DNA of 64,000 nt from Haliotis rufescens (lineage: Eukaryota). Where the stretch lies: contig NW_025963890.1 of NCBI RefSeq assembly GCF_023055435.1, positions 43,462,001-43,526,000 of the forward strand. The letters are read 5' to 3'. A model generated the notes under the pieces. The model saw only the letters and a program-made list of their open reading frames with translations. It ran no database searches and had not been told where the DNA came from. Numbering within the stretch: position 1 is the first letter of the stretch; each line of letters starts with the position of its first letter. Position numbers and translations under genes: made by a program. Shown here one piece after another: positions 3,187-64,000 of the stretch.

Positions 3187-6100
3187 ATGGAGTGTCTCAT
3201 GGCGATAGCCTTCACGGTGGCATCAGGTGCGTTTAATGCCTTTAAGCTTAAGATGATATAGACGTCATGAGCTTTTCCAAACGTTACCATGAATCTTTTG
3301 GTACATATTTAGTTTCAGAGCTGACCTCATAACATGTAGCCATCATCAGAGAATGATGATGTCAAAATCAAAATCGATGTTATGATATAACATCCAATCA
3401 ACAGCTATAGCTTTGAATAAGATTTGTTGGTTTGTTGTTTAACGCCGCACTCAGCAAGATTCCAGCTATATGAAGGCGGTCTGCAAATAATCGAGTCTGG
3501 ACCAGACAATCCAGTGATTAATATCATGAGCATCGATCCACGTAATTGGGATCGATGAGATGCATCAACCAAGTCAGCGAGCCTGACCACCCGATCCGGT
3601 TAGTCGCCTCTTACGACAAGCATAATCGCCTTTTACGGCAAGCATGGACATTTCATATTTAGATATGAATTAGATATGTGTATGTGTAAGTGCCATGCAT
3701 CATTACTTTCCCAATCAACATGTGTATCAGTTTTAATGTTTTATGAGTTCATTATTCGACAGTTTGCTCTACAAGCGCACCATGTACCAACTGTGACAGT
3801 AACAACGTGACCTGTGTTGACGGTGTGTGTCCACCTCGCTGTGTCAATGTGTCGTCATCTGGAGAGTGTCTCCAGTGTCGGGACTCCAGGTTCTATGGTG
3901 AACAGTGTGAACATGACTGTCCAGACACCTGTCTCAACTCTCGCTGTCAGATGAACAACACCCGTGCTGTGTGTACAGAGGGATGTGTGGCCGGGAGGAA
4001 GGGAGATAACTGTGGCGTGAACTGTCCTAAAGCCTGTACACAGTGTGAACGTTATGGTGATGGTTGTACAGGACCGTGTCAGAATGCCCTGTATTACGGT
4101 CCAAACTGTAGAACACCTTGTTCCTCCAACTGTACAGATGGATGTAATAGGATCACGGGGGAGTGTGACAGCTGTAAGCCAGGTTACAAGTGTGATGTTA
4201 CCTGTCCCCCTAACTGTAGAGATGGATGTGATAAAGACACGGGGGAGTGTGTCAGCTGCGTGTCGGGTTACAGAGGGAAGAACTGTAATGACACCTGTCC
4301 CCCAAACTGTAGCGATGGATGTGATAAGGAGATCGGAAAATGTGATGGTTGTAATCCAGGGAACAGTGGGAAGTACTGTAATATCTCCTGTCCTACCACC
4401 TGTAGGGAAGGATGTAATCAAGACGGCGGTTGCAACGAGACAGGTAAGTTGTACACATATTATTTTATTCATTTCAATCCCACGTTGGAATAAACACATC
4501 GAAAGTAGTTATGTTGTGAATTTGCTGGTGTCACAAAGAGAGGGGGTTGTGACAGTTGTGATACTAGAAATACGATAGGGATTATTTTGTGTTTCTCTGT
4601 CTTTACTTTGGAATACATATACTGATTGAAGAGGGCCATATCAACTTAAAGTCTACATGGACTAATCCGTTGGGATTCCGGGTTAGAATAGGTCCCCAGC
4701 AACATATGCTTGTTGTACGATGGACTGTACAGATGGATGTGAAAAAGACACAGGGGTATGTGGCAGATGGACAACACCCGTGTTGTGTGTACAGAGGGAT
4801 GTGTGGCCGGCAAGAAGGGAGATAACTGTGGGGTGAACTGTCCTACAGCCTGTACACAGTGTGAACGTTATGGTGATGGTTGTACAGGACCGTGTCAGAA
4901 TCCCCGGTATTACGGTCAACACTGTAGAACACCTTGTTCCTCCAGCTGTACAGATGGATGTAATAGGATCACGGGGGAGTGTGGCAGCTGTGAGCCAGGT
5001 TACATGGGGGACAAGTGTAATGTTACCTGTCCCCCCAACTGTGGAGATGGATGTGATAAAGACACGGGGGAGTGTGACAGCTTTGAGTAAGGTTACACAG
5101 GGGACAAGTGTAATGTTACCTGTCCCCCCAACTGTAGAGATGGATGTGATAAAGACACGGGGGAGTGTGACAGCTGTGTGCCAGGTTACACTGGGACATA
5201 TTGTAATGTTACCTGTCCCCCCAACTCTGGAGATGGATGTGATAAAGACACGGGGGAGTGTATAAAGTTAGGTGAGCATTGTTATCATCTTTGAATGTAA
5301 AATGTTAGCCAGGTACATATACATGTACCAAAGACAAAGGTTAGCTACGTAATTGAGTATTTCAATATTTCAGATGTAAAAAAACGAGTACAGGGGCTAA
5401 AAGTTATCCCAGGTATTCACTCAACAACCTTTAGAGGTTTTTTTGTTATAATAATTTGAGACATTACTTCTCATTTGATAACGATGTAAAGTATTTGTAG
5501 TCAGCATTATGCATCTATGTATGTGCTATATTTTAAATGTCTATTTTTAGGAAACAACGTAGTTATTGCTGTTGTGATAATAGCAGGGATCCTGGGCCTT
5601 GTGGTTCTGAGTGTGACCATTCCGCTTGTGTGTAATCAAGTACAGAAGAGGTTTGTGTACATACCATATCAAATCTGTTTATGCAGCATTTGGTGTTATT
5701 ACTTCAAAGCAACATTATGATACAACTATCCATGATATGAAAAAGTTGAGGTCCGCTCTTGTGTGAATGATTCTGAGATCGATAACATAATGTGAATGAC
5801 ACTTCCTGAACTTCCTGAACACGTTAACAATGTTACATTGATACCAGAGAAAAGAATTCTTCTAAACACAATGGGGGGCACGGGTGGTCTTGTCATCTTA
5901 GGCGCCGCGATTCGCTGTGCAGAGTTGCGTCCCTTGGGGCAGAAACCTATGATCGTTGGTTCGAATCCCGGTTCGCCCCGATTATGTTTCTAGGTTTGTC
6001 GGCACCATACCCATGCTCGTGGGTTTTACCGAAGTGGTAACCGCCTGAGACCTGCATCACTTCGGGGATTCCTCCCACATTAAGCTGACTAGAATACTGT

Positions 6101-12647: not shown

Positions 12648-15445
12648 ATGGCGACCCTAGCTGTGACGATCACACTGGTCATCTTGATATCAGGTACCTA
12701 TTTGCAATTTATAGAAATAGTATATATCAGTGAAATAAGCTTTGGTCTTGGATTTTTGTCATTTTCGCTCACTAAAATGTATGTAAACATAGGTAAAGGA
12801 GAATGTATTTCCCTGTATCAGTTAGAAACAGGTAACATTAACTGCAAAGGGGAATATGTTTTTGAAAAGTCATCGGTGGCTGATTTGATGTTGGTTACCC
12901 GCAAGTCACTCTTATCATTTCACCAGCAGACATTTCAGCTGAACCCGTGAAGATTCCGGGGTAGAATAGGTCTTCAATAACCCATGCTTGCCGTAAAAAG
13001 CGACTATGCTTGTCGTAAAAAGCGACTAACGGGATCGGGTGGTCAGGCTCGCTGACTTGGTTGATGCATGTCATCGGTCCCAATTGCGTTGATCCCAATT
13101 GCGTTGATCGATGCTCATGATATTAATCACTGGATTGTCTGGTCCAGACTCGATTATTTACAGACCGCCGTCATATAGCTGTAATATTGCTGAGTGTGGC
13201 GTTAAACAACCAACCAACCAACATTTCAGCTGAAAGCGTTCTTAATAAATTACACAATGTCGGACTGACTGTACCCATTGATGTGACAGTGATAAGCAGC
13301 TGGAATAAAATTTCTCGAAAGATGTGAAATTTTTTTATTTTCTTAATTAGCACTTTTTTCGTCACAGTGCCAACACTTGCACCTTCCAGTGGTCTCTGTA
13401 CCGACTGTGAGGACAATAAAAGAATATGTGTTGGAGGAGTGTGTGCGCTACGGTGCGTCAATCTGACGTCATCTGGACAGTGTCTCCAGTGTCGGGACTC
13501 CAGGTTCTATGGTAGACAGTGTGAACATGACTGTCCAGACACCTGTCTCAACTCTCGCTGTCAGCTTGACAACAGCCTGGTTATGTGTACAGAGGGATGT
13601 GTGGTCGGGAAGAAGGGAGACAACTGTGGGGCGGACTGTGATGCAGCATGCACACAGTGTGAACGTTATGGTGATGGTTGTACAGGACCGTGTCAGAATC
13701 CACGGTATTACGGTCCACTCTGTAGAACACCTTGTCCCCCAAGCTGTAGCGATGGATGTGATAAAGATAGGGGGAAATGTGGTACCTGTATAACAGGTTA
13801 CCTGGGAACGTACTGTAATGTTACCTGCTCTTCCCAATCTTGTATAACATGCGACAAAGATACAGAAAAGTGTACACAATGTGATGAGAGCCACATTGAG
13901 TGTAACGATGGAGTATGTCAGGGAGAAGCCTGCCACTCAGGTAAGGGCAGAGGATGTTTGTAAAATATAATTCAAATGAAAGCCTTTGGTTTATACTTAT
14001 CTCAGCATTATCTTCCTTCTTGTTGACCAGACACCCCGACCCGGGAAGATTCCGGGGTAGAATAGGTCTTCAGGTGACTATGCTTGTCGTAAAAGGCGAC
14101 GAACGGGATCGGGTGGTCAGGCTCGCTGACTTGGTTGATGAATGTCATCAATCCCAATTGCGTGGATCGATGTTCATGATATCAATCACTGGATTGTCTG
14201 GTCCAGACTCGACTATTTACAGACCGCCGTCATATAGCTGGAATATTGCTGAGTTCGGCGTAAAACAACAAAAAAACAACAACAACCAGACACCCGTACA
14301 TGAGATATAAAGTTGTTCACCTGGCGGCAATTATTTAATCGGGTCTAAATGTAGGCGTTCTACCGCTGTTTATTTCACTCATCATACATGTTTGAAATAA
14401 TCACAATATCAAGATAGTTGCTTTATGATAAGGTCTCTGACATAAACACTGCAGTTTAAGCTGCCCTATGATTAGCTCGATTGACTTCACATTATCATCC
14501 AAATCAGTTTGAAAACATTTTAAGATCTGTTTCGACTTAAATGGACGTAAAGTAACACTTCTGCAGATATCCGTTTCATTGAAACTATTATGTGCAGTTA
14601 GACACACTTATGAATAAAAACGAACTGTAGTTTATCGAACGTTTCAGATGCCACCACAGCCTTACCAGAGAAACCCGATGGTTTGACCACTGTCCACATC
14701 TTAATGATTGTTTGCTCCGTCCTGTCAACACTTCTGTTGGTCGGGGCTCTGCAGGCTGTTAAGAAGAAATGTAAAAAACGAAGAAGGTAAAAGAGTGATT
14801 TGAGGTTTCTACAAGAATACAGATTACACATTTACCGGAAAAATGCGGAGGATTTTACAATGTTACTATGCTGGTAAATGGTGAACTCTATAAGCTTCAG
14901 TGGTTGTTTCATTGATATGCAGGTCCCACCAGGATGCTATTACAGACTCTTCTACCCAAGCTGAAGGCAGTGGATCAAGTACGTATTTGGCGCATAAATA
15001 CTGGGAGATCAACGACCAGGACGTGGGCCCTGGTATGGAACAGGCTTTGTTGACCAACAGACGCAAACAGAGCGTGGCATTCGTCAAAGAATCTGTATAT
15101 GAACAGACGAGCAAAGAGAACAGGGTGAAGGAAGAGATCGATGTTGTGCCGGATGTTAAACCCAAAGTTGATGATACTGTAATCGCGAAGGTTGATGTTG
15201 CTCCGGTAGATGCGGTAGACTGTAACAAATCAGAATGGCATCCCGAGCATATCTATGAACCTGTGTCAGGCTCCAAGTTGGAAGGTGCTGAAGGACAATC
15301 ACACACAGTCACACACGAGGATAGGCAGATGAGCAGTGAGTCTCTGCAGTTGTTGGAATTAATCGCTGCATCTGCTAATGCAGATGTGAGATATCTAACA
15401 ACACGGAGCTCTGAGGACTCACATGATGACATTAGTGATGAGTGA
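12648..15445 (+). CDS. Receptor gene 2: EGF-repeat type-I membrane protein, ~426 aa
   Basis: Exons: 12648-12693 (MATLAVTITLVILIS), 13368-13940, 14648-14786 (TM ILMIVCSVLSTLLLVGALQAV then KKKCKKRRR), 14923-15445 (LAHKYWEINDQDV, HIYEPV, VRYLTT). AG/GT junctions, 1281 nt in frame. AATAAA at 15940. Confidence 0.9.
12944..13220 (+). mobile_element. SINE-like family B, full length (gene 2 intron)
   Basis: 14-bp TSD acatttcagctgaa. Confidence 0.9.
14039..14284 (+). mobile_element. SINE-like family B (gene 2 intron)
   Basis: Family B body and tail, TSD accagacaccc. Confidence 0.88.
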
Positions 15446-17358: not shown

Positions 17359-19517
17359 CGAAGTCCGTTTCGTTGGATGGTCAAAATGGTTCTGGCGTTG
17401 ACGTTTTATATTTAATTAGTTGAACATACCATTATTTTTTACAAATTTCATTGTTATCACGAGTCCGGAAACGGAGCGTATAAAAACACCTGGGTACTTT
17501 CTGAAATAATACACGTCACCTGTGAGTACATTAATAATTGATAAACGCACCGTGTTTCAAGTAGCCTAATTGATTCGACGCTACATGCCCCTGATAAACC
17601 GTTCACTGGCCATTTTGTGGTGATATGGACCTGAGACGTTCTGATCAGGGTTGTTTATTTGATGCCAAACAGTGACCAGGTGGTACTGTGTGTTTGAAAC
17701 AGTTGTGTGAGTCACTGAGGTTGGCTGTTTTCACCACAATGTCTGCATTATTCACTTTTATAAAATCTGTTGATGGTACCGTCCCCGATAGGCGTGCGGA
17801 GGAGGTTTCCCCTAAAATATTGATGACCCATAACTTTTTGTGTTTAAAATATTTGAATTCAGAATATTTTACTCATACGTTTCTTCGACGACATAAGTTA
17901 CATTATTTTTTCTCTTTTCAAGACTAAATGCAGGAGATGGTTCTACCTTGGTTCGCTTGATTTTATGGTGAATATTATATCAATGCTCCCTGGTGAGTGA
18001 TAAATACAGAATCTCACCCGTGTGTCTTTTGGTGTTAAATATGTCGATACAAGTTTAAAGCTTGACGAGGCGTTTTATCTTTTATGGACGAGTATTGATA
18101 TATATGATATCAAAAGAGACATTCTATTTATCATCTAAACATATTCTTCCACCTTATACACTTACTAAACAGTAATAACAAGTGTCTCGGGTTTATATCA
18201 GTCGAAAGTAGATTAGTGATGTCATTTGATTTCGACGTCATGGTAACAGATGAATGTCACAATAGTCTACCAAGCATTGTGAAGAAATTTCATCGAAGTG
18301 ATATCTCCTGTGGAAGCCTGTTTTGGATGATGAAATGTAAAATATACACATAGATTTATCATATTCAGTTACATGTTCATTTGCCAAACCATTTGAAATA
18401 GATCAGTTCAAACTGGATTAGGACCTCGAGATAGGAACGTGCCTTATTTAGCTTTTTTATTGAATTTTGTAAATTCATAAACATGTTTGTAGTTATCAAT
18501 TTGTTTAACATTGCAGCCCCGTGGGATACATAATGCCCTGGTAATCTTAGTGCAACGGATATCCCAAACCTATGTTAGAGTAAAGTTGTAGGATTATTTC
18601 ACTCTGTTAAAGGGGCACAGGACATCCTCACACTGTTTCGTTTCAGGGAAGTTGGAAATTGTGTGAATCATGAAGGTAAATTGTATTTTTGAGTCTAATA
18701 TATTGTTAATGATAATTCTATCAAATTTCGTATACCTACAAATGTACATCTATTTCTATCATGTTGAATGTGTCTTGAATATTGTCTTCCGCATGCATGT
18801 TGTTAATGGTAGTTGGGTTTTTTCATCAGAGGTACATCAGTGCAGTTAATCGTTTTAGCTTGCAAATGTATTTAAACAGCACAACCAGTATCACAGCCAC
18901 CTTATTATTCACGGACATGTCCTCATGAAACTGAATCATATTTCATGAGAAAATAATAAATATTCCCGCAAATAATGTGTTAGTTATTTAATGTTTGATG
19001 GCATTCAGTGCATATCACTGTAGGCCATTAGCAAAAATATTTCCGTTTTTCCCGTGCACCTAACACAACACCGGTTTCACTTAACATATTGATTGAGTTG
19101 GGTTTAACATAATGTTGAACAGTATTAAAATTTTACCTCGCACATCTACCCTCAGTGCAGTCTTATGTACTTGATTGTGGATACGTTTTGAAAATAACAA
19201 TCATGATAGTGACTCTTGTCTGCCCGATCGAGTCTAAATGTAAACTTCAGTTCTAAAACGCTTCGCTAAAGAGCAAAGGCGACGACCGTGCTCTATCCTT
19301 TGACAAAGTACGTTTTTTATTACGTGAAAATAGGATGACGTCATCAAGCTGTTAATTTACTTCCAATTGTAATTTAGTATCCTTTTGGTGATATAGCTCT
19401 GTCACTCATGTCAATCAAGATGGCGCATTCACATCAATTATCGATCGGTGAAATATTTTCTTTGACGAAAAATATTGAATTGAATATTATTCCATGGGAA
19501 GACACATATAGTGCATG

Positions 19518-20540
19518 CTGTACACACTACTGTTCTGCACACACTACTGCGCTGTACACACTACTGTTCTGTACACACTACTGTTCTGTACACACAACTG
19601 CGCTGTACACACTACTGTTCTGTACACACTACTGTTCTGTACACACTACTGTTCTGTACACACAACTGTGCTGTACACACTACTGCGCTGTACACACAAC
19701 TGCGCTGTACACACTACTCTGCTGTACACACTACTGTTCTGTACACACTACTGTTCTGTACACACTACTGTTCTGTACACACAACTGTGCTGTACACACT
19801 ACTGCGCTGTACACACAACTGCGCTGTACACACAACCGCGCTGTACACACAACTGTGCTGTACACACTACTGTGCTGTACACACAACTGTGCTGTACACA
19901 CAACTGCGCTGTACACACTACTGTTCTGTACACACTACTGTTCTGTACACACTACTGCGCTGTACACACAACTGCGCTGTACACACTACTGTGCTGTACA
20001 CACTACTGCGCTGTACACACAACTGCGCTGTACACACTACTGCGCTGTACACACAACTGCGCTGTACACACAACTGCGCTGTACACACTACTGTTCTGTA
20101 CACACTACTGTTCTGTACACACTACTGTTCTGTACACACTACTGTTCTGTACACACAACTGTGCTGTACACACTACTGCGCTGTACACACAACTGCGCTG
20201 TACACACAACTGCGCTGTACACACTACTGTGCTGTACACACAACTGTGCTGTACACACAACTGCGCTGTACACACTACTGTTCTGTTACACTACTGTTCT
20301 GTACACACAACTGTGCTGTACACACTACTGCGCTGTACACACAACTGCGCTGTACACACTACTGCGCTGTACACACAACTGCGCTGTACACACAACTGCG
20401 CTGTACACACTACTGTTCTGTACACACTACTGTTCTGTACACACTACTGTTCTGTACACACAACTGCGCTGTACACACTACTGTTCTGTACACACTACTG
20501 TGCTGTACACACTACTGTGCTGTACACACAACTGTGCTGT
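19518..20540. repeat. 17-bp minisatellite CTGTACACAC[TA]ACTG[TT/CG/TG], about 60 copies
   Basis: Directly visible tandem array with a small set of variant units. Confidence 0.97.
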
Positions 20541-20689
20541 GCTCACTACCACATCAGCCACAAGCGGGCGTTGGTGCCCTATTAATTATATCTGTCTTTG
20601 GGCATAGGAATAAGCAATCCTGTTGCTCAGCATAGGGCATTTAGCAGTACACTACTCTCAAACAAGTTGCTCTTCCTCCACCATGTTCA

Positions 20690-21379: not shown

Positions 21380-22205
21380 AGTCTCGCAACGTAAGGGAGC
21401 GGGCACAGGTACAGTCTATGTGCATGTGTGTTCAGACACATATCTCAAATCTAGCTGTGAGATTGGCGACACCAATGTTGTTCAGAGAGATGTGTGGCCA
21501 GCATTTGTTTTTGTCGCCAGCTATATGACGGTGGTCTGTAAATAATCGAATCTAGACCAGACAAGCCAGTGATTGACATCATGAGCATCGATCCACTCAA
21601 TGTCGATACGATGACTGAAAATAAGTGATGACACCAGGTGAAGCAGCGAAAAGAGTAGCATGCCCTGCCCTACCGGTAGCACCCGCCATTCATACAATTT
21701 GCATAAAAAAGTAAGTATCTATTGCCTGACGCAGTGCAGCAGTACTCCTTCCATGCGACGTCAGCCTGTAAACAAAAAGACGATCACGTGATCGATGAAC
21801 CAGAAAACCCAGTGACATGAGAGTTCTATTACTGATTATGTTGAAAACGTTGAGAAATATATTCATTTTGCAACACAGTGGGGCGCATTTTATACGACAA
21901 TGTGAGCGTCGTGGTAATGCGTGTTTAGACAAGTGTTTCAATCCTCGTTACTGCGCAACACTGTATTCGAAACGGTGTCCAGGAAGGTGTAGAGATGGCT
22001 GCGACAAAGACACTTAATGAGTTTGACAGATGCATGAAAGGTTAGATAGGGAGGTACTGCAATTGCTCTTGATATTAACACCACGCATGCCACCTTTGGA
22101 TGAACTTTGTGATGAACACTGGCAACTTTCCCTGACTGCATAGATGGGAATAAATGAAAGGATTACTGTCACCAGACATGTCCATTCAATTGTACTACAT
22201 GTTTC
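21380..22205 (+). pseudogene. Decayed relic of an additional receptor ectodomain exon
   Basis: 21405-21503 aligns by eye to the core ectodomain DNA (cagacacatatctcaaatctagctgtgagat...gatgtgtggcc). 21898-22014 reads QCERRGNACLDKCFNPRYC...CPGRCRDGCDKDT*, and 22161-22202 reads DYCHQTCPFNCTTC. Repeat fragments interrupt it. Confidence 0.7.
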
Positions 22206-23411: not shown

Positions 23412-26400
23412 ATGATGCTCCTAACAGACTCTGTACGTGGAGTTGTTACGCCTGTGACACTGGTACTTCTGGTATCAACAATAGCAGGTTTGTGTTCTTA
23501 TTTATTGGGAGATAAATCCTAAAGTATCAGCTGTGATGCAGCACATTACATATATTAACTATACATAATACTTGTCCTACCATCTTAGTGCACCTCAATA
23601 TCCTGCACGCAGCTCTTATGAACAGATTAGAAACTATCTGAAAGATTTTAAGGTTAGCTGAAGTATACTATTGTCCAAAAGAAAGTATACCAAGAGTTTG
23701 AAAGACTATGAAAGAAAAACGAAAGCTTGTAGAAAGTCAATATGCATATGTTTTAACATAATGTGTAAAACTGCTCATGTTATCCAAACAAAACCATTAC
23801 GACTGACTGAGACACAAGCACATATAAGGGTACATAATGACAAGTTTCACTCTTCCATTCCTCTATGAATGTTTCACATACAGAAAAGGTGAATACTGAA
23901 CTATCATAGTATTGAAGATGTTTAACTTGTTAATTATATTCAGTACAATACGCTGTTTCGTTCCTAATCGACAGTTTCCCATTCAGGCACACCTTGTAGC
24001 AACTGTGACGGTAACAACGTGGCCTGTGTTGACAGTGTGTGTCTACCTCGCTGTGTCAATGTGACGTCATCTGGAGAGTGTCTCCAGTGTCTAGACTCCA
24101 GGTTCTATGGTAAACAGTGTGAACATGACTGTCCAGACACCTGTCTCAACTCTCGCTGTCAGATGGACAACAGCCGTGTTGTGTGTACAGAGGGATGTGT
24201 TGCCGGCAAGAAGGGAGATAACTGCGGTGTGAACTGTCCTACAGCCTGTACACAGTGTGAACGTTATGGTGATGGTTGTACAGCACCGTGTCAGAATCCT
24301 CGGTATTACGGTCAACACTGTAGAACACCTTGTTCCTCCAGCTGTACAGATGGATGTAATAGGATCACGGGGGAGTGTGACATCTGTGAGCCAGGTTACA
24401 TGGGGGACAAGTGTAATGTTTCCTGTCCTCCAACCTGTAGAGATGGATGTGATAAAGACACGGGGGAGTGTGGCAGCTGTGAGCCAGGTTACATGGGGGA
24501 CAAGTGTAATGTTTCCTGTCCTCCAACCTGTAGAGATGGATGTGATAAAGACACGGGGGAGTGTGACAGCTGTGAGCCAGGTTACATGGGGGACAAGTGT
24601 AATGTTTCCTGTCCTCCAACCTGTAGAGATGGATGTGATAAAGACACGGGGGAGTGTGACAGCTGTGAGCCAGGTTATATAGGGAAGTACTGTGGCAGCT
24701 GTGAGCCAGGTTACACAGGGGACAAGTGTAATGTTACCTGTCCCCCCAACTGTAGAGATGGATGTGATAAAGACACGGGGGAGTGTGGCAGCTGTGAGCC
24801 AGGTTACTCAGGGGACAGGTGTGATGTTACCTGTTCCCCCAACTGTACAGATGGATGTGATAAAGACTCGGGGGAGTGTGACAGCTGCGTGTCGGGTTAC
24901 AGAGGGAAGAACTGTAATGGTGCCTGTCCCTTCAGCTGTAGAGGTGGATGTGATAAGGAGACCGGAAAGTGTGAGGGTTGTAATCCCGGAAACAGTGGGG
25001 AGTATTGTAATATCTCCTGTCCTATCACCTGTAGGGAAAGATGTCATCAAGACGGTGGGTGCATCGTGACCGGTAAGTTCCATAATTATTTTATTCATTG
25101 CAATCCCACATTGGAATAACCACATTGAAAGTAGTTATATTATGCACTTGCTAGTGCCACAAACAGAGGGGATTGTGACAGTTGTGATACTAGAAATACG
25201 ATAGGGATTATTTGTGTTACTCTGTCTTTACCTTGGAATACGGAAACTGATTGAAGAGGGCCATGTCAACATAAAGTCTACATGGACTAATCCGTTGGGA
25301 TTCCGGGATAGAATAGGTCTCCAGCAACATATGCTTATTGTACGATTGACTGTACAGATGCATGTGATGACGACACAGGGGGGCATGACAGGTGGACAAC
25401 ACCCGTGTTGTGTGTACAGAGGGATGTGTGGCCGACAAGAAGGGAGATAACTGTGGTGCGCACTGTCCTACAGCCTGTACACAGTGTGAACGTTGTGGTG
25501 ATGGTTGTACAGGACCATATCAGAACACCCGAACTTATGGTCCACTCTGTGAACTCCAGTTGCGCGGATGTATGTCATAGTGTCATCGGAGAGCGTCACC
25601 CCTGTATGCCAGGTTACACTAGGAACAAATGTTATGTTACCTGCCACCCACACCCAAAAATGTAGAGATGGATGTGATAAAGTCATGGGGGAGTATATAA
25701 AGTGATGCATGACCAAGCATTTTCCTTCTGTTAATCTTCTGTGGTAATGATAACAATGTTTAATCATGACGTCGCTTTGACAATTCAGTATCATTTTCCA
25801 ATACACTATGTACTCAGTAGAGTTGCCTACAATTTCGTGTTTCAAATTTCTAAATGGCATCGAAGAACCAAACGCAATCACTCATTTCAAACACCAAGCA
25901 ACGAAATAATGCCTCGTCTGGTGTTTATCGGTATATTGATTGCCCTGAAATGACGAATAACAGACAGTGATTCGTCGACCAGTGGGATGGATATGTCTAT
26001 ATGTCAAATATAAATCCGGATGACTATTGTTGACATTGAACTATTCTAATAGCAGGCTAACTTGAATTCTTTGTAAGGTAGGCTAGGGAGGGCCTTCTGA
26101 TTTTAATCTGACATAACGTTAATTCAGCAGGTTGTATTTTGGACAAGAAAGAAAGATAAAGTATGTAATATATTTTTGACGCGGTTAAGGGCTATTCCAT
26201 AACGGGATCAATATTACCCCTGAATAGGTCATTTATGATTGAACAGAATCGATATTTTTATCGCTTCGTCCCTTATGAGGGAGGCAGTGTTTACTCTTGT
26301 GTTCTCAAACCATGTTCTCTTATGCGTTTTGTCATTTATTGCCGTACATTATTCCGGTGCCCATCGTTCTATTTTAGTTTTGATATCCTGCTGTTCGTGT

Positions 26401-27713
26401 TATACTGAAGCAATTTGATTGAGCTCTGTTGAGATTGTTGTTGAGACTTTTAATGGACAAGGAAGAATTAACAGTTTTGACCATGAGTAATTTTAAAGGT
26501 CCAATTCAAAATAACAGGGTATATACTGACTGTATAAAATGTCAACACGATATCATAGTGTAAGTCCTGTTTAGTATATACCATAACGAGTTGGACAGTA
26601 CGACATCTGACATTGCCTTCATGTGATAGAGAACGGAGTATGGATACCCCTTTGGATTTTGTATGAGCTTGTTAGAAGCGCATTGCTTGTCTGTATTATG
26701 ATAAATTGAGTTCTGATCTATATTTTGTTATTTACAGGAGGACAAATTTCCCCTTTCCAAATAACCACTGGAATCCTGGCGATGATTGTCATTTTGGTGA
26801 TGGGGATATTGATCCTGCAACGATTATCAAAACGTGTGGAAAGGTGAGAAGATTACTTCACAAGCAATGACAAATAGGGGCTACAGAAAACTACTGTGTC
26901 ATGTCACTGGTACCAAATCGCAAACGCATTTCATCATTGTATGACTTGGTGATGTGATAATTGTCTTTAAAAGGCATGTCCTCATTCTTTTCAACACATC
27001 TGACAACATTTCAAGACTTTAATTATAATAGTTATGCTAATTATGTTTATTAGATAAGGCATATATCTGGTGGGCCAAAATTGCTCTTATGATGCCTAAT
27101 CCTTTTTTCAGCATCTACTTACACAGTGATATAACTGTTTTGCAGACGTGCCTCCTCAACGTCGCCTCCTCCGGAAGGTCGGACACAGCCGGGCCCAGCT
27201 GGTGATTCAGGGGATCTCCACGACAATAATGGAGGGACACAGCCAGGGCCTACAAGCAGCTCGGGGGATCTCCTCGACAGGGATGATTGGACAACAAAAT
27301 ACTGGGTAATCCATGACAGAGATGTTAATTCCACATCATCCTGCTCACAGACTCACAACGAAGTAATACAACTACGAAGAAAGAATTATGAAATTAGTAA
27401 ACCATTATCAGTTGATAAACAACCGAACGTTCATGGACGCGCAAGGACAACCAAGAGACACCTGTCCGAATCACCAGTTGACACAACATCATCGTTGTCC
27501 TTGTTGGGTGCAACGTCACATGTCAAAGGTGACGGTTTAAGATCAAAGTCAGCCCATGATATACGTGGCATCACTATATCGCCAGAAGTCAAGGAATTGA
27601 TAAAGAAAACTGATTCGATCATATTCATTGAGCAAAACTGCGACTTGTCAAGAGTGAGTGCCACTTATCTTAGTCCAACAGCTGACACATGTCATCATCA
27701 CACAAGTGAGTGA
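23412..27713 (+). CDS. Receptor gene 3: EGF-repeat type-I membrane protein, ~615 aa (longest ectodomain)
   Basis: Exons: 23412-23487 (MMLLTDSVRGVVTPVTLVLLVSTIA), 23975-25072, 26738-26843 (TM ITTGILAMIVILVMGILIL), 27146-27713 (WTTKYWVIHDRDV ... LIKKTDSIIFIEQNCDLSRVSATYLSP). 1848 nt in frame. Confidence 0.9.
24388..24890 (+). repeat. Intragenic 93-bp (31-aa) tandem module array in the gene 3 ectodomain
   Basis: Three near-identical consecutive EPGYMGDKCNVSCPPTCRDGCDKDTGEC[GD]SC units, followed by more diverged units. Confidence 0.95.
25350..25705 (+). pseudogene. Degenerate second ectodomain copy in gene 3 intron 2 (counterpart of 4723-5271)
   Basis: Same junction and flanks as the gene 1 remnant, with frameshifts. 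Confidence 0.75.
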
Positions 27714-47333: not shown

Positions 47334-47352
47334 TATATTTCTTGATATACAA

Positions 47353-48577: not shown

Positions 48578-51359
48578 ATGCCATCAAGGACAACATTCTC
48601 GGTGGTCCTGAACTCAGTGGTGCTGACATGTATTCTGCTGTTATTTCCCATTGAAGGTTAGTAAAGGAATAATGTTTCACATGTAGTCAGAAGCCTGGTA
48701 GATCATGGACTCATTAATTCAAACGTTTCGAGGAGTGAAATAGTGTTTCATTTGAAGGAGTAAATGGATGCTAGATAGTTTGATTACATTTATTTTATTT
48801 TTCCATTTTGCAAGGTGTTTTCTTTTGTGCTGACATCTCTTTCCTGTGTTATCTCTGCCTTTTTCTCACTGCAACGACAGCTCCTACATCAACGACACTG
48901 TGTAACGAGTGTGACGGTAACAACGTTACCTGTGAAAATGGCGTGTGTCTACTACGTTGCGTCCGTTTGACGTCATCTGGAGAGTGTCTCCAGTGTCTTG
49001 ACTCCAGGTTCTATGGTAAACAGTGTGAACATGACTGTCCAGACACCTGTCTCAACTCTCGCTGTCTGATGAACAACACCCGTGTTGTGTGTACAGAGGG
49101 ATGTGTGGCCGGCAAGAAGGGAGATAACTGTGCCTCTTCTTGTCCTTCGTCCTGCTCACAATGTGAACAGACAGGAGATGCCTGTATTGGACCATGTCAA
49201 AACGACCAGTATTACGGTTCACAATGTGAAACTCCCTGTCCTGATAACTGTTTGGATGGCTGTAGGAATGACACGGGGAGCTGCAAAAGCTGCGTGGACG
49301 GTTACACAGGAGAGTACTGTAATGGATGTGTGGTGGGCTACAGTGGGGGGTACTGTAACATTGCTTGTCCCCCACACTGCCTGGACGTATGTGATAAAGA
49401 CAAGGGTGAGTGTGGCAGCTGTGTGACAGGTTACACAGGGACGTTCTGTAATGAAACCTGTCCCTCCAACTGTACTCCGTGTGAGCAACGTAATGGGCAG
49501 TGCATTGGACCATGCCCCGACAGCCTGTACTACGGCCCTTTCTGTTCTATACAATGCCCTACAAGTTGTGCGGGATGCGACAAGACGACAGGGAGATGCA
49601 TTCTCTGTGCCGATGGCTACACACAGTGTACGGACGGTCTCTGTCAGAAGGGTGACTGTGACTCAGGTGGGTGGTACACATGAACTTTTGCCTAAACATC
49701 AAACATGTTCATATGCTATTTAATAGCTATTAAAAGTATATCGACATAAGTCTATTTGATATTGATCCATAAACACATGCTCATCATATAGTCGGAATCG
49801 AACAATCGCCTTCTATTGACTAAGAGAGGGGTTTTGTCACTTTTATTTTATCTAAAATGTAATTTTCGTTTTAGTGAGGATTTGACAAACAAGTTAAGAT
49901 AAAATGATGTCTTTAAAAAGAAACAAAATGACTAGAATATAACGAAAGTACCTCCTGTCACTGTCTCCGATATAATATTATTTACATTGGTATACATGTG
50001 TGTGATATGATTTACAATGTACATGTAACCGTTTTTTTCTATTAACACGTTTCAAACGTTAGATGTGCGATGAATTAAATATTTCATCTTGTCCTTTCAT
50101 TAAAAAGGGAGGGCAATATTACAATGAAGTGCATACATTATATCCGTGTTGGGAATCGAACCTGGGCTTTCTGCGTGACTGGCGAAAGGCTTTAATGACT
50201 CGCAATTGACTTGTCTTTGCATGTGTTTGTGACGTGTACCGGTGGGGCGGGATACGCTCGCATTTTCTCGAACACCTGGTTTCTTTATTATTTGATAGTG
50301 ATTCATAAACACTTGCTCATGACATAGTAGGGATCGGAACAGTCGACTCTGCTTTGTGCAGATATTTCTATTGGATATGGAAGGGGTTTTGTAGCTTTAT
50401 TTATATCTAGGCTACACCTCGCTTCGAACATAATAAACAGTGTACTCATATTTGTATTACTACAGGTAACACGATTTTGACTCTGAAAGTGACAGCTGGA
50501 GTGCTGGCGATGGCTGTGTTGCTTGGAACGATCTTGGCGGTGGTCATTCTGGTCAGACGCAGGAGCAAATGCCAACACGGGTAAGAATGTTAATGTACTA
50601 TCATAATCACATAGCAAATACATGTTTAGAATACGTCCATAATATTAGCTTCTTGTTTTCTCATATGCAAACACAGTTGTGAATGTGAATCTGAAATTTT
50701 AGAATTGAAAGTGTTTAAATTATATGTCACTTTCAGAATAATGTGCTTGAATAATGATTCATCAACACTAAGGGGACTATTTACTAAACTGCACTTTTTT
50801 TCTCAATAGTGAGATGTCTCCCCGTCAAGACATTCCACAGGACCTTGGTCAGAGTGACAGCAATGAATACTGGGCCCACAAATACTGGGAAATACATGAC
50901 AAGGAATCTGGCTCTGAATCTGGGTCAAACATCTCACCTGTGCTCCCGTTACCCTATAGACGATCTGAACAAGCCAAGGATATCCCCCTAGGAAATGTCA
51001 CAGTAAGGAAACCAATGCCGTATAATACTGACGTGTCACCGGCGGCTGTGGTACACCAGGATGGACATGATTCGACTTATGAACCATTTGTTGTGGAATC
51101 GCCACAGTCGGACGTGGTGGACAGTGTCGTGGCTGGTGCAGCAGAGGAGGACATCATGGGTACGACACTCAGTAACTCTGGTCCTCGGACAAATCAGGAA
51201 GGGGGCGGAGTCATGAAGAATCCCATCCAACCTCATATTCAGCACCTTATCAGAAAGACGGAATCTATAATAGCTATTGAACAACATCTTGATTTAGCAA
51301 ATATCAATGTCAAATATCTTACACCTGATAAAGTTAACACCAGTTCAAATACATTATAA
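48578..51359 (+). CDS. Receptor gene 5: EGF-repeat type-I membrane protein, ~509 aa
   Basis: Exons: 48578-48656 (MPSRTTFSVVLNSVVLTCILLLFPIE), 48881-49666, 50466-50580 (TM VTAGVLAMAVLLGTILAVVILV), 50810-51359 (YWAHKYWEIHDKE ... LIRKTESIIAIEQHLDLANINVKYLTP). 1530 nt in frame. AATAAA ~51436. Confidence 0.9.
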
Positions 51360-54013: not shown

Positions 54014-57000
54014 ATGGCGCCTTTCGGTTCGATATTGCGACACCCGGTGTTCTGTGTGGTAGCGGCCATCTGCATGGTACCCGTCACAGCAGGTTTGTTT
54101 TTAACACCAATAATTTATGATAAATGGAGAGTAACGATCATGAATACTTTTTAGTAAACAATGTTTAAAGCTGAAACAAATACAAATATACTGTTCATAT
54201 TGCCTATTCGAAATATTGCAGATTGCGATATATACTTAAACAATTTGTAGTCATTTCTGGTTTCCGAGCTCAAAAGTTGTATTTTCAACGGAGACCGTTT
54301 ATAATCTAATGTACTAAGTGTCATTGTTATGATTCTATTAAGAATGTTGCAATTCCATTGATTAAAAAAGTACCAGGTGCCGAAACAATACATTTCAATG
54401 TAGACCTCCAAATCATGTCTCGTCTGACTTGTCACATGATCAGTATTGACCCTTCACGTGATGAATATTGACTCGTCTGCTAGAAACAAGATGGCGTCTT
54501 GTATACTACCATTTTCCGCTTTGCAGCTAAGTTACTGTAAAGAAACAGATAACGGCTTAATGGCTTCATAAATTTGAAAGTGAATTTCGGTATAACAAAA
54601 CAACTGATTACTTTTGACAAGGTCATTATGCGAAAAAAAGGAGCCTCGGACCCGACTGATTCGTCGGTCTGACGAGACCCCGGCCGTCGGTCTCGATCCG
54701 GTCAGACGATCTCAGGGGTCGGGTCCTCGGGTCCTTGTTTTCGCATATGGACCTATTAAGAGTAATTTTTTGTTTATTGTTTATCACTTTTTGTGAAAGG
54801 TTCTTCAGTGTGCTCCTCCTGCACCGGTAACAACGTGACCTGTGCTGACGGTATATGTCTGCCTCGCTGTGTCAATGTGACGTCCTCTGGAGAGTGTCTC
54901 ATGTGCCGTGATTTCATGTTTCACGGGGTACAGTGTGAAACCCTCTGTCCACACACCTGTCTCAACGCGCGTTGTCAGATGAACAACTCCCATGTTGTTT
55001 GCAAAGAGGGATGCGTGGCTGGCAAGAAGGGAGATAACTGTGGTGTTGACTGTCCGCCATCTTGTACACACTGTGTAGGGGATGAATGTATAGGTCCATG
55101 TTTGAACCCCCGGTATTTTGGTCCTAAATGTAAAACACCATGTCCCGAGGACTGTAATAGTGGCTGCGATAAAAACACAGGGAAATGCAAACCATGTTCT
55201 GTAGGTTACATGGGGGAGCACTGTACCACTGTTTGCCCCTCGGGATGTAAAGATGGGTGTCACCAGGAGACAGGGGCATGTAACAGCTGCATGCCTTGGT
55301 ACGGTGGGGACTATTGTGACGTTTGTCAGACAGGGTACCGCGGGAAGTACTGTAACATTAATTGCCCAGCCTTATGTACAGCGTGTGAGCGCCATGGGAA
55401 TAAGTGTATCGGAGCTTGCCTGAATATTTGGAATTACGGTCAATATTGTAATCTCTCATGCCCATCCAACTGTAGAGAGAGGTGCCAGAAGTTGACGGGG
55501 GAGTGTGATGGTTGTGTACCGGGGTTTAGAGGCACATATTGTAACGTTACCTGTCCAGTAAACTGCACAGAGTGTACGCGTCTTGCTGATGAGTGTGTGG
55601 AACCGTGTACTGACAGCAAGTCCTATGGAGCATCCTGCCAACACCACTGCCCAGTCAACTGCAAGGACGGCTGTTACAGACTGACGGGCGACTGCATCAA
55701 CTGTAACCCTGGTTACAGAGGGAGATACTGTAAGCTTCCGTGCAGCAATGGAGCATGTAATCCAGGTGAAGTTATTACAGGAGACTGTTTACACCCCTTT
55801 GGATTTTCTTTAGAAATGAGTGAGTGAGTGAGTGAGTTGGGTTTAACGCCGCTGTTAACATTATTCCAGTTATATCACGGCATGTCAGCTTAATGTGGGA
55901 GGAAAGTCCGAAAGTGATGCAGGTCTAAGACGTTTACCACTTCGGTGAAACCCACGAGCACGGATATGGTGCTGACAAACCTAGAAACATAATTGGGACG
56001 AACCGGGATTCGAACCCACAATCATAGGTTTCTGGCGTGCCCAAGGGACGCAACTCTGCACAGCGAATCGCGGCGCCTAAGACGACTGGTCCACCCGTGC
56101 CCCCTCTTTAGAAATGGTATATGGTATATGATATTCATGCTTGGTTAAAATGAATGTATTACAGGCAGTAAAGATTAAACGGTATAAACAAATTGGAAAT
56201 ATAATCTTTTTATAGCAATGGCTGCAACGGCGTATTGATGTGAGATCAGGAGTGAAATTATGTAGAATAAGGGGTAATATAGTGGTAAATAAGAACATTG
56301 CGAAAAGCATGACAAGTTCTAGCCCATCTAGTTCTTGTCGAGGTTGTTTGATGCTTGATCAGGGTTACGGCATTCGAGGCCTCGGTGGGGCTTTTGGGGA
56401 CGTGTGGAGGACGCATCGGTGACGAAAATGCTTTTGGCTTGTGCCGTTTGTTACCGTGTTTTTTTTAGGTGTAAAAAATGACTTGCCTTTGCATGTGTTT
56501 GTCACTGGTGTCACCGATGGGGCAAGATGCAATCACCTTTTCGCGAACACCTAGTATCACCACTATTTGATAGAGATTCATAAACACATGGTAATGATAT
56601 AGTAGGAATCGTACAACCAACAAGAGATTTCTATTGAATATGGAGGGGTTGTTGTCGCTTTTAATGTAATTGCAATGGTTCCGTTTGTCATTCTAATTGA
56701 TGCGAAATATTTCTGAATATATAATCTATATTGAACTTTCAACTAGCGATGATTATGCATTCATATATATCATTTTAGGTGACCCGAGGCTGACTACGAA
56801 AGTCGTTGGTGGCGCAGTAGCTGTGGTGGTGCTGCTGGGCTTGTCTATAGCTGGGTCGGTGCTAATGAAGCGTTATAGAAGCCACCATAGGTAGGTATAG
56901 GGTCTGTAGTCATATCGTTTAAACATCATTACCTCATTAAAACGGTGTGTCACTTAAAACGATTCAACTGCATCAAATAATCTATACTTTAAACATGTTC

Positions 57001-58143
57001 ATATCAGTGCCCTGCTTATATCACTAACCCGCTTTTCTGAGATCTCACTTTAGATATTATGTCAGGAAAATTTAGAACATACTTTCAATACACATATTTA
57101 TCACATTGTATAGTTTTACAATGATACATGTTCCATTTAATCGTTATATTATTCCACCCGTGAAGATTCCGGGGAAGAATAGGTCTTCAGCAACCCATGC
57201 TTGCCTTAAAAGGTGACTATGCTTGTCGTAAAAGGCGACTAACGGGATCGGGTGGTCAGGCTCGCTGACTTGGTTGATGCATGTAATCGATCCCAATTGC
57301 GTGGATCGATGCTCATGACATTAATCACTGGATTGTCTGGTCCAGACTCGATTATTTACAGACCGCCGTCATATAGCTGAAATATTGCTGAGTGCGGCGT
57401 TAAACAACCAACCAACCAACCAACCAACGTTATATTATTCCGTTCCTTGACTAGTATTCAGTTGGTTAGATATGTTTGTCTGGTGACTAACTGAAAAGCA
57501 GTTGTGAAACAAGTACTGAACACATTCTATGTTTGTATTTGACAGTCGGGTTCCTGCCGCCGCTTGCCGAGCTGAAACAACACGTCGATGCAACTGTGGC
57601 GATTACTGGACACACAAATACTGGGAAATAAATGAACAGGACGTGAACTCGGATCAATGTTTAGAGGAAGTAGCTCGGCCCACTTCGCGTTATCCCCATA
57701 CACTGGCAAGAACAACCCGCGCTGAAAGCAGACCAGAGAAACCGGAACATGAACGACGGGGGTCCAACAAAATAGAGGAACAAAACGCCAACTCTATATC
57801 TGTTCCAGGGACTCTCAATATTGAGACATTTCAGGGGTCTAACACTGGGGCAGGATTGACAATGACTGCTTCCTACTGCGAAGCACGTCCTACTGTAATT
57901 CATGATGATGATGATGATGATGGCTTGTATCCAATTGATGAGAAAGTATCTTTTCTGAACACTGAAGGCGATCCAATACTTGCCTCAGCCAAAAGTGAAA
58001 ATGGTATTGATTATTGTCATATGTCACTTGACACCCAAAGGTTGATTAAAAAGACTGATTCGGTCCTATTCATAGAGCAAAACTGTGACATGTCCAAAGT
58101 CAACGTCAAATATCTGACCCCAAAGTCCAAACTTAAAACTTAA
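54014..58143 (+). CDS. Receptor gene 6: EGF-repeat type-I membrane protein, ~584 aa (most diverged ectodomain)
   Basis: Exons: 54014-54092 (MAPFGSILRHPVFCVVAAICMVPVTA), 54800 (or 54809)-55765, 56779-56890 (TM VVGGAVAVVVLLGLSIAGSVLM), 57546-58143 (YWTHKYWEINEQDV ... LIKKTDSVLFIEQNCDMSKVNVKYLTP). 1755 nt in frame. Confidence 0.9.
54620..54754. mobile_element. Palindromic MITE just upstream of the gene 6 ectodomain acceptor
   Basis: aggtcattatgcgaaaa / ttttcgcatatggacct ends with nested internal inverted arms (ggacccgac/gtcgggtcc, tctgac/gtcaga, gagacc/ggtctc). Confidence 0.8.
55819..56104 (-). mobile_element. SINE family A, full length
   Basis: 12-bp TSD tctttagaaatg. Confidence 0.9.
57156..57427 (+). 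mobile_element. SINE-like family B, full length
   Basis: 14-bp TSD cgttatattattcc. Confidence 0.9.
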
Positions 58144-60591: not shown

Positions 60592-60703
60592 TGAGTGAGT
60601 GAGTGAGTGAGTATGGTTTTACGCCGCTTTTAGCGATATTCCAGCAATACCACGGCGAACATGACGAGCGAACGCTTTAACCACTAGGCTACCCGAACGC
60701 CCC
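60592..60703 (-). mobile_element. SINE family C, internally deleted
   Basis: TSD agtaattcaag. Confidence 0.85.
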
Positions 60704-60866
60704 AGTAATTCAAGAATGTGAACAGATGTTGGCGGATTACAACGTCATGGATCTAGACTACTCGGCTTATAAATAATTTCATTTCATCTTCCTCGTCATT
60801 AGTTTCACGACCGTTTCATAAGCCCGTATGTAGCACTTACAGGACCTGGTGCACAAGATAAGCTTC

Positions 60867-63800
60867 ATGTCAGCCATGCTGGTTATAATGAAGCTGCTGC
60901 TTTTCGTAACAGGTAAGTACTTTGATGCAAAAAAGTAAACCAGATATGATTGACTCGTTTATTGCTTTGCATTTACGGCAAACCCCTTACAATACTGAAA
61001 CTGTTATTCTTCCGTGTTTGCTGGTATAAGAAGGCCACAGCAAGTTGATGACTTCTCCGGAGTCTCCTCGTCGCCTATCTAAAATACCCCTTAATTCCTC
61101 AGATGATAATTTCTACCTTGCTGGTAGAAAGGGTAAGTGTTTCATAACATCTTCCCTTCCCTTACCCGTGAATATGTTTTGTGACATAAATCGTAACATT
61201 CATCATTACACCTGTCTTGTAATTTCCTTCGAACCGTGAAGATCCGGGGTAGAATAGGTCTTCAGCAACCCATGCTTGCCGTAAAAGGTGACTAACGGGA
61301 TCGGGTGGTCAGGCTCGCTGACTTGGTTGATGCATGTCATTGATCCCAATTGCGTGGATCGATGCTCATGATATTACTCACTGGATTGTCTGGTCCAGAC
61401 TCGATTATTTACAGACCGCTGTCATGTAAGCTGAAATATTGCTGAGAGCGGCGTTAAACAACAAAACCCAGAAGGATATTTGTAACTGCAACGTGAACGA
61501 AACAAGAGAGTTTGGGATAACACCAACTTAAAATTAGTACTACTGAATGATCGTGAGAAATGGGCTTCACACATTATACCCGTGTGGAAATCGAGCCCGG
61601 GATTTCGACGTGACGACAGACGCTTTTACCACTAGGCTACCCCACCGCCCCTGTTATCAGAGTGAAGGAGTTGTATAAACTGAGTATATCAAGGAATACA
61701 TGTTTCTTATTCTTTGAGTTGGAGTTCTAATGAAGTTATGTTTCTCACTGCAGCAATAGCTGTTTCGTCGAGTAAACCTTGTACCAACTGTGACGGTAAC
61801 AACGTGACCTGTGTCGACGGCGTGTGTCTACCTCGCTGTGTCAGTGGAGAGTGTCTACACTGTCGGGACTCCAGGTTCTATGGTAAACACTGTGAACAGG
61901 ACTGTCCAGACACCTGTGTCAACTCTCGCTGTCAGATGGACGACACCCGTGTTGTGTGTACAGAGGGATGTGTGGCCGGCAAGAAGGGAGATAACTGTGG
62001 AGTGAACTGTGATGCCGCGTGTTCGCAGTGTGAACGTTATGGCAAGGACTGTACGGGACGTTGTCAGGACCCTCGATACTACGGTCCCCTGTGTAGGACA
62101 GCTTGTCCTTCCAGCTGTCGAGGTAGATGTGATAAAGACACAGGGGAGTGTGACAAATGTGATTCAGGCTACAACGGAAGGTACAATATAAGTACATAAA
62201 ACTGTATNNNNNNNNNNNNNNNNNNNNNNNNNNNNNNNNNNNNNNNNNNNNNNNNNNNNNNNNNNNNNNNNNNNNNNNNNNNNNNNNNNNNNNNNNNNNN
62301 NNNNNNNNNNNNNNNNNNNNNNNNNNNNNNNNNNNNNNNNNNNNNNNNNNNNNNNNNNNNGCGGCATTCATTCTACAAAAGATAAAATATAAAAAAATAT
62401 ATATGGAAAATGCTTGACGTAAAAGGCGCTAACGGGATCGGGTGGTCAGGCTCGCTGACTTGATTGATGCATGTCATCGTATCCCAATTGCGTGGATCGA
62501 TTCTCATGATGTCTATCATTGTATTGTCTGGTCTCGAGTATTTCCAGACCGCCGCCATATAGCTGGAATATTGCTGAGTGCGGCGTTAACCAACAAACAA
62601 AGCAAAGGAAACGCATATGGAATACGTCATATGATAACTTATTTAGTTCTATATTTAACGTTATCGTTTACAAAATTAAATTTGTTGGAAGTTACTAAAC
62701 TGTCAAATTCATCTGTCAGTAGTGAAGAGATGTGTCTGAGATGCGGACCCCAGTTCCTCTACTGTGACGGACAGTGCTTCCAGTGCATTGGCGACAACTG
62801 CCACAACTCTCCCTGTGGGACACGTAACTAGTTTATTTTATTGCAAATATCATGGTAAACTTTATTATTAGATCGTTTATACGGAATAACAAAGTAATGT
62901 TTATTGAAACTCATCATAAGCTTCATGTTTATGTTCTTATAAATTATATACCTGATTTTACAATCATATTTAAGAATGTCGTTGTCAAAGTTGATCAATT
63001 ACTGAACAACTAGTTACAAAGACGACGAAACAATTTCCAACATTTTGTACAAATTTAAATATTTTGTCAATAATGCATTGTGAATTCCATGTATGAATCT
63101 CTCTCTCCACCCTCTTTGTCTTCGCTGGCTCAAGAAAAGTTACACTAAAATGTATATAATGTTTCTGTCATGTATATTGTTCTTTATGCAGGACACACAT
63201 ATCACATCCTACAAGTTGTATCGGGAATCCTCGCAGTGATTGTACTTATTGGGTCAGCCTGTGTTGTGGTAAATCTAGCCAGACGAAAGACCAGATGTCG
63301 AAAGAGGTAATAATTTATGTCTAATGATAAATGTTAACAAATACAAATTTGTGTTAATCGAGAGTTATCTAACCCTTTCCCTACCTCGAATAATAACTAA
63401 GTTTTAAAAGCATCTTACAGTCTTACAGTTGAAAAGGCTTGTCCAAAGACTTGTCTCCATTCGTTGAGACTCATACTCCGTCCTGATGACCATCACAATA
63501 TCAAACGAAGAGGAGAGTAGGGGACGTACTGGGGACAGAAGTTGGCTGACACTGTGGCTAGCCGACACACTTGTGTCTAAACCTTGGTAATACCTCTTTG
63601 TTATATAACCAATCTAACTGTACAATTAAGAGTGTGAACCTTTTGTTTTACAGAAAGACCACCCAGTCCGGGGAAGAGGCCACAGACGGGAGAGATGTCT
63701 CGAAGAGCGATGGCAGTGGTCATTGGGCTCACAAGTACTGGGAAATACACGATAAAGCCACAGATACCGATTCGTATGTAAGCATTTTGTCTTTAAATGG

Positions 63801-64000
63801 ACTAACATGTACAGTGACCAGTGTTAATGAAAGCGACGTCACGAGGAAGCAAAAGTCCACTGGTCAAGAGTCCCCATCTGTGTCAACTGACCCAGCCGCC
63901 GTGCAGTCTGATTCGGACAAAACAAGACATCACTGGGAAAAGGAAACTATGGACGGCTGTTTCAAGCATGGTGGACTGAATATGAATCCAGAGTCGAACC
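60867..64000 (+). CDS. Receptor gene 7: EGF-repeat type-I membrane protein, 3'-incomplete (window end), ectodomain spans an assembly gap
   Basis: Exons: 60867-60912 (MSAMLVIMKLLLFVT), 61754/61760-~62180, ~62720/62723-62823, 63192-63306 (TM ILQVVSGILAVIVLIGSACVVVNL), 63654->64000 open (GHWAHKYWEIHDKA...). Confidence 0.75.
61233..61468 (+). mobile_element. SINE-like family B (single-hairpin variant)
   Basis: Family B sequence lacking the internal 22-nt duplication. Confidence 0.85.
62208..62360. other. Assembly gap (N run)
   Basis: Run of N. Confidence 1.
62410..62600 (+). mobile_element. SINE-like family B, 5'-truncated
   Basis: Family B body and tail. Confidence 0.8.

Follow-up and report, generated by a model that had tools for sequence, protein, structure and literature searches.

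The stretch of DNA considered here, hereafter the window, comprises 64,000 nucleotides from the genome of the red abalone Haliotis rufescens, a vetigastropod, and covers positions 43,462,001-43,526,000 of contig NW_025963890.1 (G000:C112:43,462,001-43,526,000). On its forward strand lie seven open frames with 15-18% cysteine, at about 3.7, 13.3, 24.0, 36.3, 48.8, 54.8 and 61.7 kb, and these mark seven genes that we number 1 to 7. We consider it probable that they belong to a Haliotis-specific tandem array of type I receptors, in which a rod of EGF-like units, assembled from shuffled exon cassettes, stands outside the cell and a tail with tyrosine motifs lies within it; ligand binding and signalling would be their respective functions.

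Seven tandem genes and the array around them

Gene models were built by scanning for splice sites and phase (acceptors and donors of the large exons, transmembrane (TM) exons, leader exons and tail acceptors). Exons were joined only for frame checks and motif scans, and database and fold searches were run exon by exon. Each of genes 1-6 yielded a four-exon model in which every intron is GT-AG, the intron phases are 1, 1 and 2, no internal stop occurs and a terminal stop is present (Table 1). An initial annotation of this DNA had claimed six complete in-frame models; all six were rebuilt with GT-AG introns and open frames, and the lengths that it gave for their ectodomain exons were reproduced exactly. 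It had also extended the four-exon, 1,1,2-phase design to all seven genes. This is correct for genes 1-6, but gene 7, as modelled by the annotated protein P0023, has five exons with phases 1, 2, 1 and 2 and a splice at 62180|62720. A TM exon is present in all seven. Two proteins match the window at 100% identity, P0023 and P0011, the latter an H. rufescens entry that NCBI names 'MEGF10 isoform X1' (584 aa) and that equals our gene 6 model residue for residue. The order of ectodomain, TM exon and tail in the other genes is mirrored in annotated proteins of H. cracherodii, H. asinina and H. rubra.

Part of the array is transcribed and spliced. Two Logan contigs (557 and 713 nt; runs X1 and X2, from two studies) cover 5549-5648 and then continue directly at 8349. 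Because the 2.7-kb intron is missing from them, at GT-AG borders, we read them as spliced RNA crossing from the TM exon to the tail exon of gene 1. In run X6, which is from a different organism, one contig piece stops at 4443, which is the predicted ectodomain donor of the same gene. Comparison with RNA-derived contigs thus bore out the TM-tail junction of gene 1, but its leader-ectodomain junction was not seen in the aligned contigs, whose joint table was swamped by repeats resembling short interspersed nuclear elements (SINEs), and one low-depth piece of run X6 crosses the predicted gene 1 donor at 3226.

Searches that took in the whole 1.33-Gb genome placed the 118-residue N-terminal module of gene 3 (the N-module) on C112 at least 31 times with an identity of 65% or higher. 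About 26 of the matches fall within 43,318,728-43,667,884 (~350 kb), all on the forward strand bar the last two, which are on the minus strand. A profile of the tails gave 19 matches, representing ~17 tail exons, all at C112 43,321,798-43,535,502. Exons for the catalytic domain of a protein tyrosine phosphatase (PTP) lie at C112 43.624-43.628 and 43.659-43.662 Mb, at the distal end of the array and beside two minus-strand N-modules; no PTP exon lies within the window. The seven genes thus form one section of a larger array, and the original description of an array of seven, accurate as to tandem arrangement and common strand, has to be widened to at least 26 N-modules over ~350 kb. The array has at least three tail classes: tyrosine-motif, short and tyrosine-phosphatase.

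Relatives of the N-module also occur elsewhere. Six further copies at C112 50,003,648-50,227,923, 86-90% identical to that of gene 3, are followed by very long runs of a 31-residue EGF unit in open frames of up to 1128 aa, and neither a YxEI-type tail nor a PTP exon was found near this cluster. Weaker relatives lie at C112 34.6, 44.6-45.2 and 66.2-66.6 Mb and on C1. The other multi-EGF arrays of the red abalone genome reach only 35-55% N-module identity to the present array, to which, in contrast to them, the YxEI/IFIEQ tail is limited.

Table 1. Genes and detached ectodomain sequences of the window (window coordinates).
Feature	Position	Strand	Ectodomain exon (nt)	Product (aa)	Remarks
Gene 1	3187-3226, 3763-4443, 5551-5650, 8351-8699	+	681	389	In-frame model; orthologue of H. 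cracherodii P0002
Gene 2	12648-12693, 13368-13940, 14648-14786, 14923-15445	+	573	426	Exon-by-exon alignment with orthologues P0018 and P0019
Gene 3	23412-23487, 23975-25072, 26738-26843, 27146-27713	+	1098	615	Longest ectodomain; 68 Cys, 10 EGF-end motifs
Gene 4	35388-35463, 36354-37046, 39865-39964, 40241-40778	+	693	468	Last EGF unit shortened at donor
Gene 5	48578-48656, 48881-49666, 50466-50580, 50810-51359	+	786	509	Orthologue P0016
Gene 6	54014-54092, 54800-55765, 56779-56890, 57546-58143	+	966	584	Equals NCBI P0011
Gene 7	60867-60912, 61754-62180, 62720-62823, 63192-63306, 63654 onward past window	+			Exact P0023 mapping; full tail seen in L010
Copy B (gene 1 intron 2)	4764-5300	+			Dead partial second ectodomain cassette; lacks first ~65 residues, one in-frame stop
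Second cassette (gene 3 intron 2)	25389-25693	+			Badly degraded ectodomain cassette
Isolated fragment (between genes 2 and 3)	21895-22202	+			~40 residues of EGF-like unit and two short ectodomain pieces

The ectodomain and the cytoplasmic tails

In the proposed organisation, the signal peptide comes from a short leader exon. A disulphide-rich EGF-like rod with a conserved tip and a variable stalk is encoded by a single phase 1-1 exon or, occasionally, by two, while a small exon supplies the TM helix and the last exon the cytoplasmic tail. The ectodomain resembles human SCARF1 by sequence and in its predicted fold. A phmmer search of the PDB with the ectodomain matched human SCARF1 only (8hna_B, 2.5e-5). 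AlphaFold2 modelled the ectodomain exon of gene 2 as a rod of small beta-hairpin modules, with a predicted local distance difference test (pLDDT) score of 80, and the best Foldseek match to this model was the N-terminal SCARF1 fragment 8HNA (E 2.9e-6, prob 1.00, 22% identity), after which came the EGF rods of Notch and Jagged. In a Pfam scan of the seven ectodomain exons (E<=0.01) the sole match above the cut-off was EGF_laminin on gene 3, and no EMI domain was matched; the CCxGW-type signature that marks the EMI domain is absent from the N-module alignment. Matches outside Haliotis are generic EGF proteins at 28-45% identity. The most conserved part of the protein is the membrane-distal tip, the N-terminal 118 residues, which are 65-91% identical between copies, and the stalk behind it has from 2 to 10 EGF-end motifs per gene among the seven window genes. 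No charged residue was found in the TM helices that were scanned.

The tail exon encodes ~125-205 residues that are largely disordered. Most members carry a proximal motif, Y-[W/S]-[E/V/D]-I, 30-60 residues past the membrane, and the C-terminal motif consists of a short helix of the KTDSIIFIEQ type followed by V-x-Y-L-[T/S]-P; both tyrosine motifs are present in 17 of 17 annotated tails from four Haliotis species. Across 12 tails of the red abalone genome, the invariant columns are the proximal Y and I and then S, E, Y and L (...SIIFIEQ...VxYL...). An AlphaFold2 model of the tail (pLDDT 55) shows disorder except where short helices form over the C-terminal motif. The tail profile, searched against 1.84 billion representatives, returned nine proteins, all of them from Haliotis, in keeping with the earlier suggestion of a lineage-specific family, and four tail exons scanned against Pfam at E<=1 had no meaningful match.

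Gene 1 departs from this pattern. Its tail (8351-8699) lacks YWEI, is unlike the other tails and single-copy in the genome, and is orthologous to that of the H. cracherodii 'SCARF1-like' protein P0002. The idea of a distinct tail common to the array therefore survives as a lineage-specific tyrosine-motif tail, but not for gene 1.

The motifs themselves were compared with those of known signalling receptors. NPxY occurs in none of genes 1-7 and in one of the 17 annotated tails. Gene 7 (63654-63999) has YWEI-x9-YVSI, a spacing like that of an immunoreceptor tyrosine-based activation motif (ITAM) and one not seen in the other 16 annotated tails; an ITAM reading was rejected, since this is the only gene with matching spacing. 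The corresponding inhibition motif (ITIM) was likewise rejected, position +3 of the C-terminal motif being P or T. The optimum of Src-family SH2 domains is pYEEI, which YxEI resembles; to name docking partners for the tyrosine motifs would be a guess. The phosphatase tail class is seen in H. cracherodii P0013, a PTP-tailed counterpart that comprises an N-module, two EGF units, a TM helix and a Y_phosphatase domain (PF00102, 3.5e-79) with an intact catalytic loop, HCSAGVGRTG, which conforms to HCxxGxxR(S/T).

Cassette turnover and the history of the array

The array grows and changes as exon cassettes, symmetric in phase (1-1), are duplicated and recombined. As DNA, genes 1 and 3 are similar only in the ectodomain exon, the adjacent intron and the dead cassette (3753-5073 against 23965-25694), and nothing in their leader, TM and tail regions aligns bar one repeat-like match of ~180 nt (69% identity). 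We take this pattern as direct evidence of cassette exchange. The dead cassette of gene 1, copy B, is in turn 92.8% identical in nucleotides to the gene 4 exon (36536-37079); its 3' end, which translates as ECIKLG, matches the 3' end of that exon, and the gene 4 ectodomain exon ends at the donor that closes the dead cassette of gene 1. In the next gene downstream (P0008), which lies outside the window, the ectodomain is encoded by two phase 1-1 exons (567 and 507 nt). Taken with the dead cassettes, this two-exon arrangement indicates that the ectodomain is made of symmetric cassettes that are gained, lost or left to decay. The single-exon ectodomain described earlier accordingly applies to genes 1-6, but not to gene 7 or its downstream neighbour, in both of which it is split in two.

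In gene 7 the frame closes at a TAA (62197-62199), 8 nt before a run of N at 62208-62360, and the sequence read through this stop still resembles the ancestral continuation of the EGF unit. To the right of the gap, the first ~330 nt belong to a SINE-like repeat in which every frame contains stops and of which a copy also lies near 61.2 kb. Gap and repeat fall within the extra intron of the annotated gene 7 model, and the two ectodomain pieces total 531 nt, a multiple of three, as expected from interruption of one phase 1-1 exon. The SINE-like family has a summed contig depth of 10^5-10^6 and occupies 3291-3672 and 5774-6155 in gene 1 introns and ~61200-61350 and 62361-62700 on the flanks of the gap. 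Another mobile element lies in gene 4 intron 2, where an open reading frame (ORF) at 37827-38489 (+) encodes the N-terminal part of a Tc1/mariner-type transposase (HTH_29 and HTH_Tnp_Tc3_2 matches) and helps explain the 2818-nt length of that intron.

Pairwise ratios of nonsynonymous to synonymous substitution (dN/dS, by the Nei-Gojobori method) for the N-module are 0.26-0.51 in older pairs and 0.57-0.95 within the young trio of genes 1, 3 and 4 (dS about 0.1), and none exceeds 1. The tails are saturated between most paralogues, with the exception of genes 3 and 4 (dS 0.31, dN/dS 0.33). The relatively high ratios of the young pairs would suit an array consisting largely of decaying or non-functional duplicates that gene predictors have stitched together, as would the dead cassettes in the introns of genes 1 and 3, the truncated last EGF unit of gene 4 and the ectodomain exon of gene 7, which a stop, a SINE-like repeat and a gap interrupt. 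We nevertheless regard such a history as very unlikely: six models are complete and open over 389-615 codons, their splice sites being canonical, the older pairs have the lower ratios given above, orthologues have been kept in species as distant as H. asinina, and gene 1 is represented by spliced RNA contigs.

A tree of N-modules, which rests on a 118-column alignment, places genes 2, 5 and 6 and the downstream gene in well-supported one-to-one groups with H. asinina and H. rubra. The clade of gene 5 and P0016 has 100/100 support, gene 7 joins H. asinina P0021 at 87/90, and gene 2 groups with P0018 and P0019. Genes 1, 3 and 4 form a core without resolution, together with the PTP-type modules. 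The initial annotation had called these receptors diversifying, a term that is not borne out: the N-module is their most conserved part, its dN/dS never exceeds 1, and for four of the seven genes stable one-to-one counterparts exist in other abalone species. Such orthologues, like the conserved tip, speak against a simple diversification driven by pathogens.

MEGF10/11 show homotypic recognition, and on that analogy one might instead see in the array a set of developmental or cell-cell adhesion receptors, in which the tip would bind homophilically or to a common partner and the stalk would set the spacing. We think this unlikely, even though it accommodates several of the foregoing results: a tip that is the most conserved part of the molecule would be unusual for pathogen-driven receptors, one-to-one orthologues across Haliotis are old, and dN/dS stays below 1. 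However, a tandem set of at least 26 members, in which cassettes turn over and some copies are dead, is more typical of families that face the environment.

The tips and tails of the array also invite comparison with paired receptors, and we have considered whether a common EGF tip, kept similar by gene conversion or cassette exchange, might be presented on tyrosine-motif, short or PTP tails, such that one ligand would elicit opposing outputs. Gene 3 has an N-module that shares 87-91% identity with its counterparts in the two PTP-tailed genes lying where the array ends, while its whole ectodomain exon is only 74% identical to that of its H. asinina tail-orthologue P0004. The N-modules of genes 1, 3 and 4, at dS ~0.1, stand on tails that are either unrelated (gene 1) or at dS 0.31 (genes 3 and 4). 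In the N-module tree the H. asinina PTP-type module groups with the tyrosine-tail types of the same species, and forced monophyly of the three PTP-type modules is rejected by the approximately unbiased test (p-AU 0.028), a result that is suggestive only, the group having been picked after the tree was seen and the alignment having 118 columns. Beyond the N-module, however, the stalks differ in length and composition, and genes 2, 5, 6 and 7 behave as ordinary stable orthologues. We therefore hold a paired-receptor-like system to be distinctly improbable for the array; if true, it would be a molluscan counterpart, built without immunoglobulin (Ig) domains, of the paired receptors of vertebrates.

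Known receptor families and the proposed function

The closest likeness is to the class F scavenger receptors, SCARF1 (SR-F1) and SCARF2, which like the array members are type I proteins with an EGF-rod ectodomain that lacks an EMI domain. Among solved structures, the sequence search matched SCARF1 only, and several members bear the NCBI name 'SCARF1-like'. Class F receptors have modified LDL and other polyanions as ligands. In contrast, the array tail is unrelated to those of SCARF1 and SCARF2, its profile matching Haliotis only; SCARF receptors are encoded by one or two genes and the array by at least 26 in tandem; and the array ectodomain occupies one or two large exons, whereas vertebrate SCARF genes have many exons. 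With MEGF10, Draper and CED-1 the array shares an EGF-repeat ectodomain, a single TM helix, a tyrosine-bearing tail and the names given to it automatically, but those receptors have EMI together with NPxY or ITAM motifs, where the array has YxEI and VxYL[T/S]P. Paired immune receptors of the KIR, SIRP and Siglec-5/14 type likewise set similar ectodomain tips on different tails within one cluster, and the array shows signs that the history of the tip is decoupled from that of the tail. We draw this comparison as an analogy and not as a claim of membership: paired receptors are Ig proteins and the array is EGF-like, the similarity among its members is confined to the N-module, and its alternative tail is a catalytic PTP instead of an ITIM or an adaptor-binding TM helix.

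Full-length one-to-one orthology to a characterised receptor, tail included, was looked for and none was found, and in the literature on MEGF or SCARF arrays of abalone and other molluscs we found no paper on the present family. The Aplysia immunome paper lists two MEGF10 orthologues as C1q receptors (PMC9334734). Automated annotation handles the array much as had been anticipated, its members being named MEGF10, SCARF1-like or CED-1-like, or else truncated. The truncated case is gene 3, for which the NCBI model P0054 (XP_046382112.2, 'uncharacterized protein LOC124153046'; 209 aa, window 26782-27713) takes an internal Met of the TM exon as its start and omits the whole 1098-nt ectodomain exon.

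Our preferred reading of the array, that of Haliotis-specific, cassette-shuffled receptors, would work as follows. The ectodomain would bind extracellular ligands, as class F scavenger and MEGF-type receptors do, and the tail would signal, or be internalised, through tyrosine phosphorylation and SH2-type docking; the array would meanwhile grow and change as its symmetric exon cassettes are duplicated and recombined. We infer ligand binding and tyrosine signalling from the analogy with scavenger and engulfment receptors and from the two invariant tyrosines in an otherwise disordered, fast-evolving tail. The immune role put forward in the initial annotation is possible.

Several observations weigh against this reading. 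Pfam recognises the ectodomain exons poorly (one EGF_laminin match among seven), the tyrosine motifs match no canonical ITIM or NPxY pattern, and ITAM-like spacing is confined to gene 7. The direct junction evidence comes from one junction, in gene 1, in runs that are guessed, and not confirmed, to be RNA. Some members may also be decaying, because the last EGF unit of gene 4 is truncated and the ectodomain exon of gene 7 is disrupted.

To our knowledge, molluscs have no adaptive immunity of the antibody type, and withering syndrome and vibriosis afflict abalone fisheries; expanded families of surface receptors are for these reasons candidates for the discrimination of friend from foe. We note that the array offers a clean and testable case of receptor evolution by shuffling of symmetric (phase 1-1) cassettes, that its genus-restricted tail, which bears two invariant tyrosine motifs, is unnamed in the domain databases searched, that phosphatase-tailed members share the array with tyrosine-motif members, and that automated annotation at present mislabels or truncates its genes.

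The sequence between the genes holds further features. Between genes 1 and 2, a 211-codon open frame at 10442-11074 (+) has no Pfam match, and its C-terminal stretch (…LIKFIE…) is vaguely like the tail motif; the frame may be a decayed tail exon or a product of chance. A retroelement remnant lies between genes 3 and 4 at 31790-33091 (-), where one ORF matches RNase H (1.6e-9) and a neighbouring ORF of 196 aa has no Pfam match. Between genes 2 and 3, at 19516-20549, a 17-nt tandem repeat (unit TGCTGTACACACTACTG, ~61 copies, 91% matches) gives rise to three spurious long open frames of 356-399 aa.

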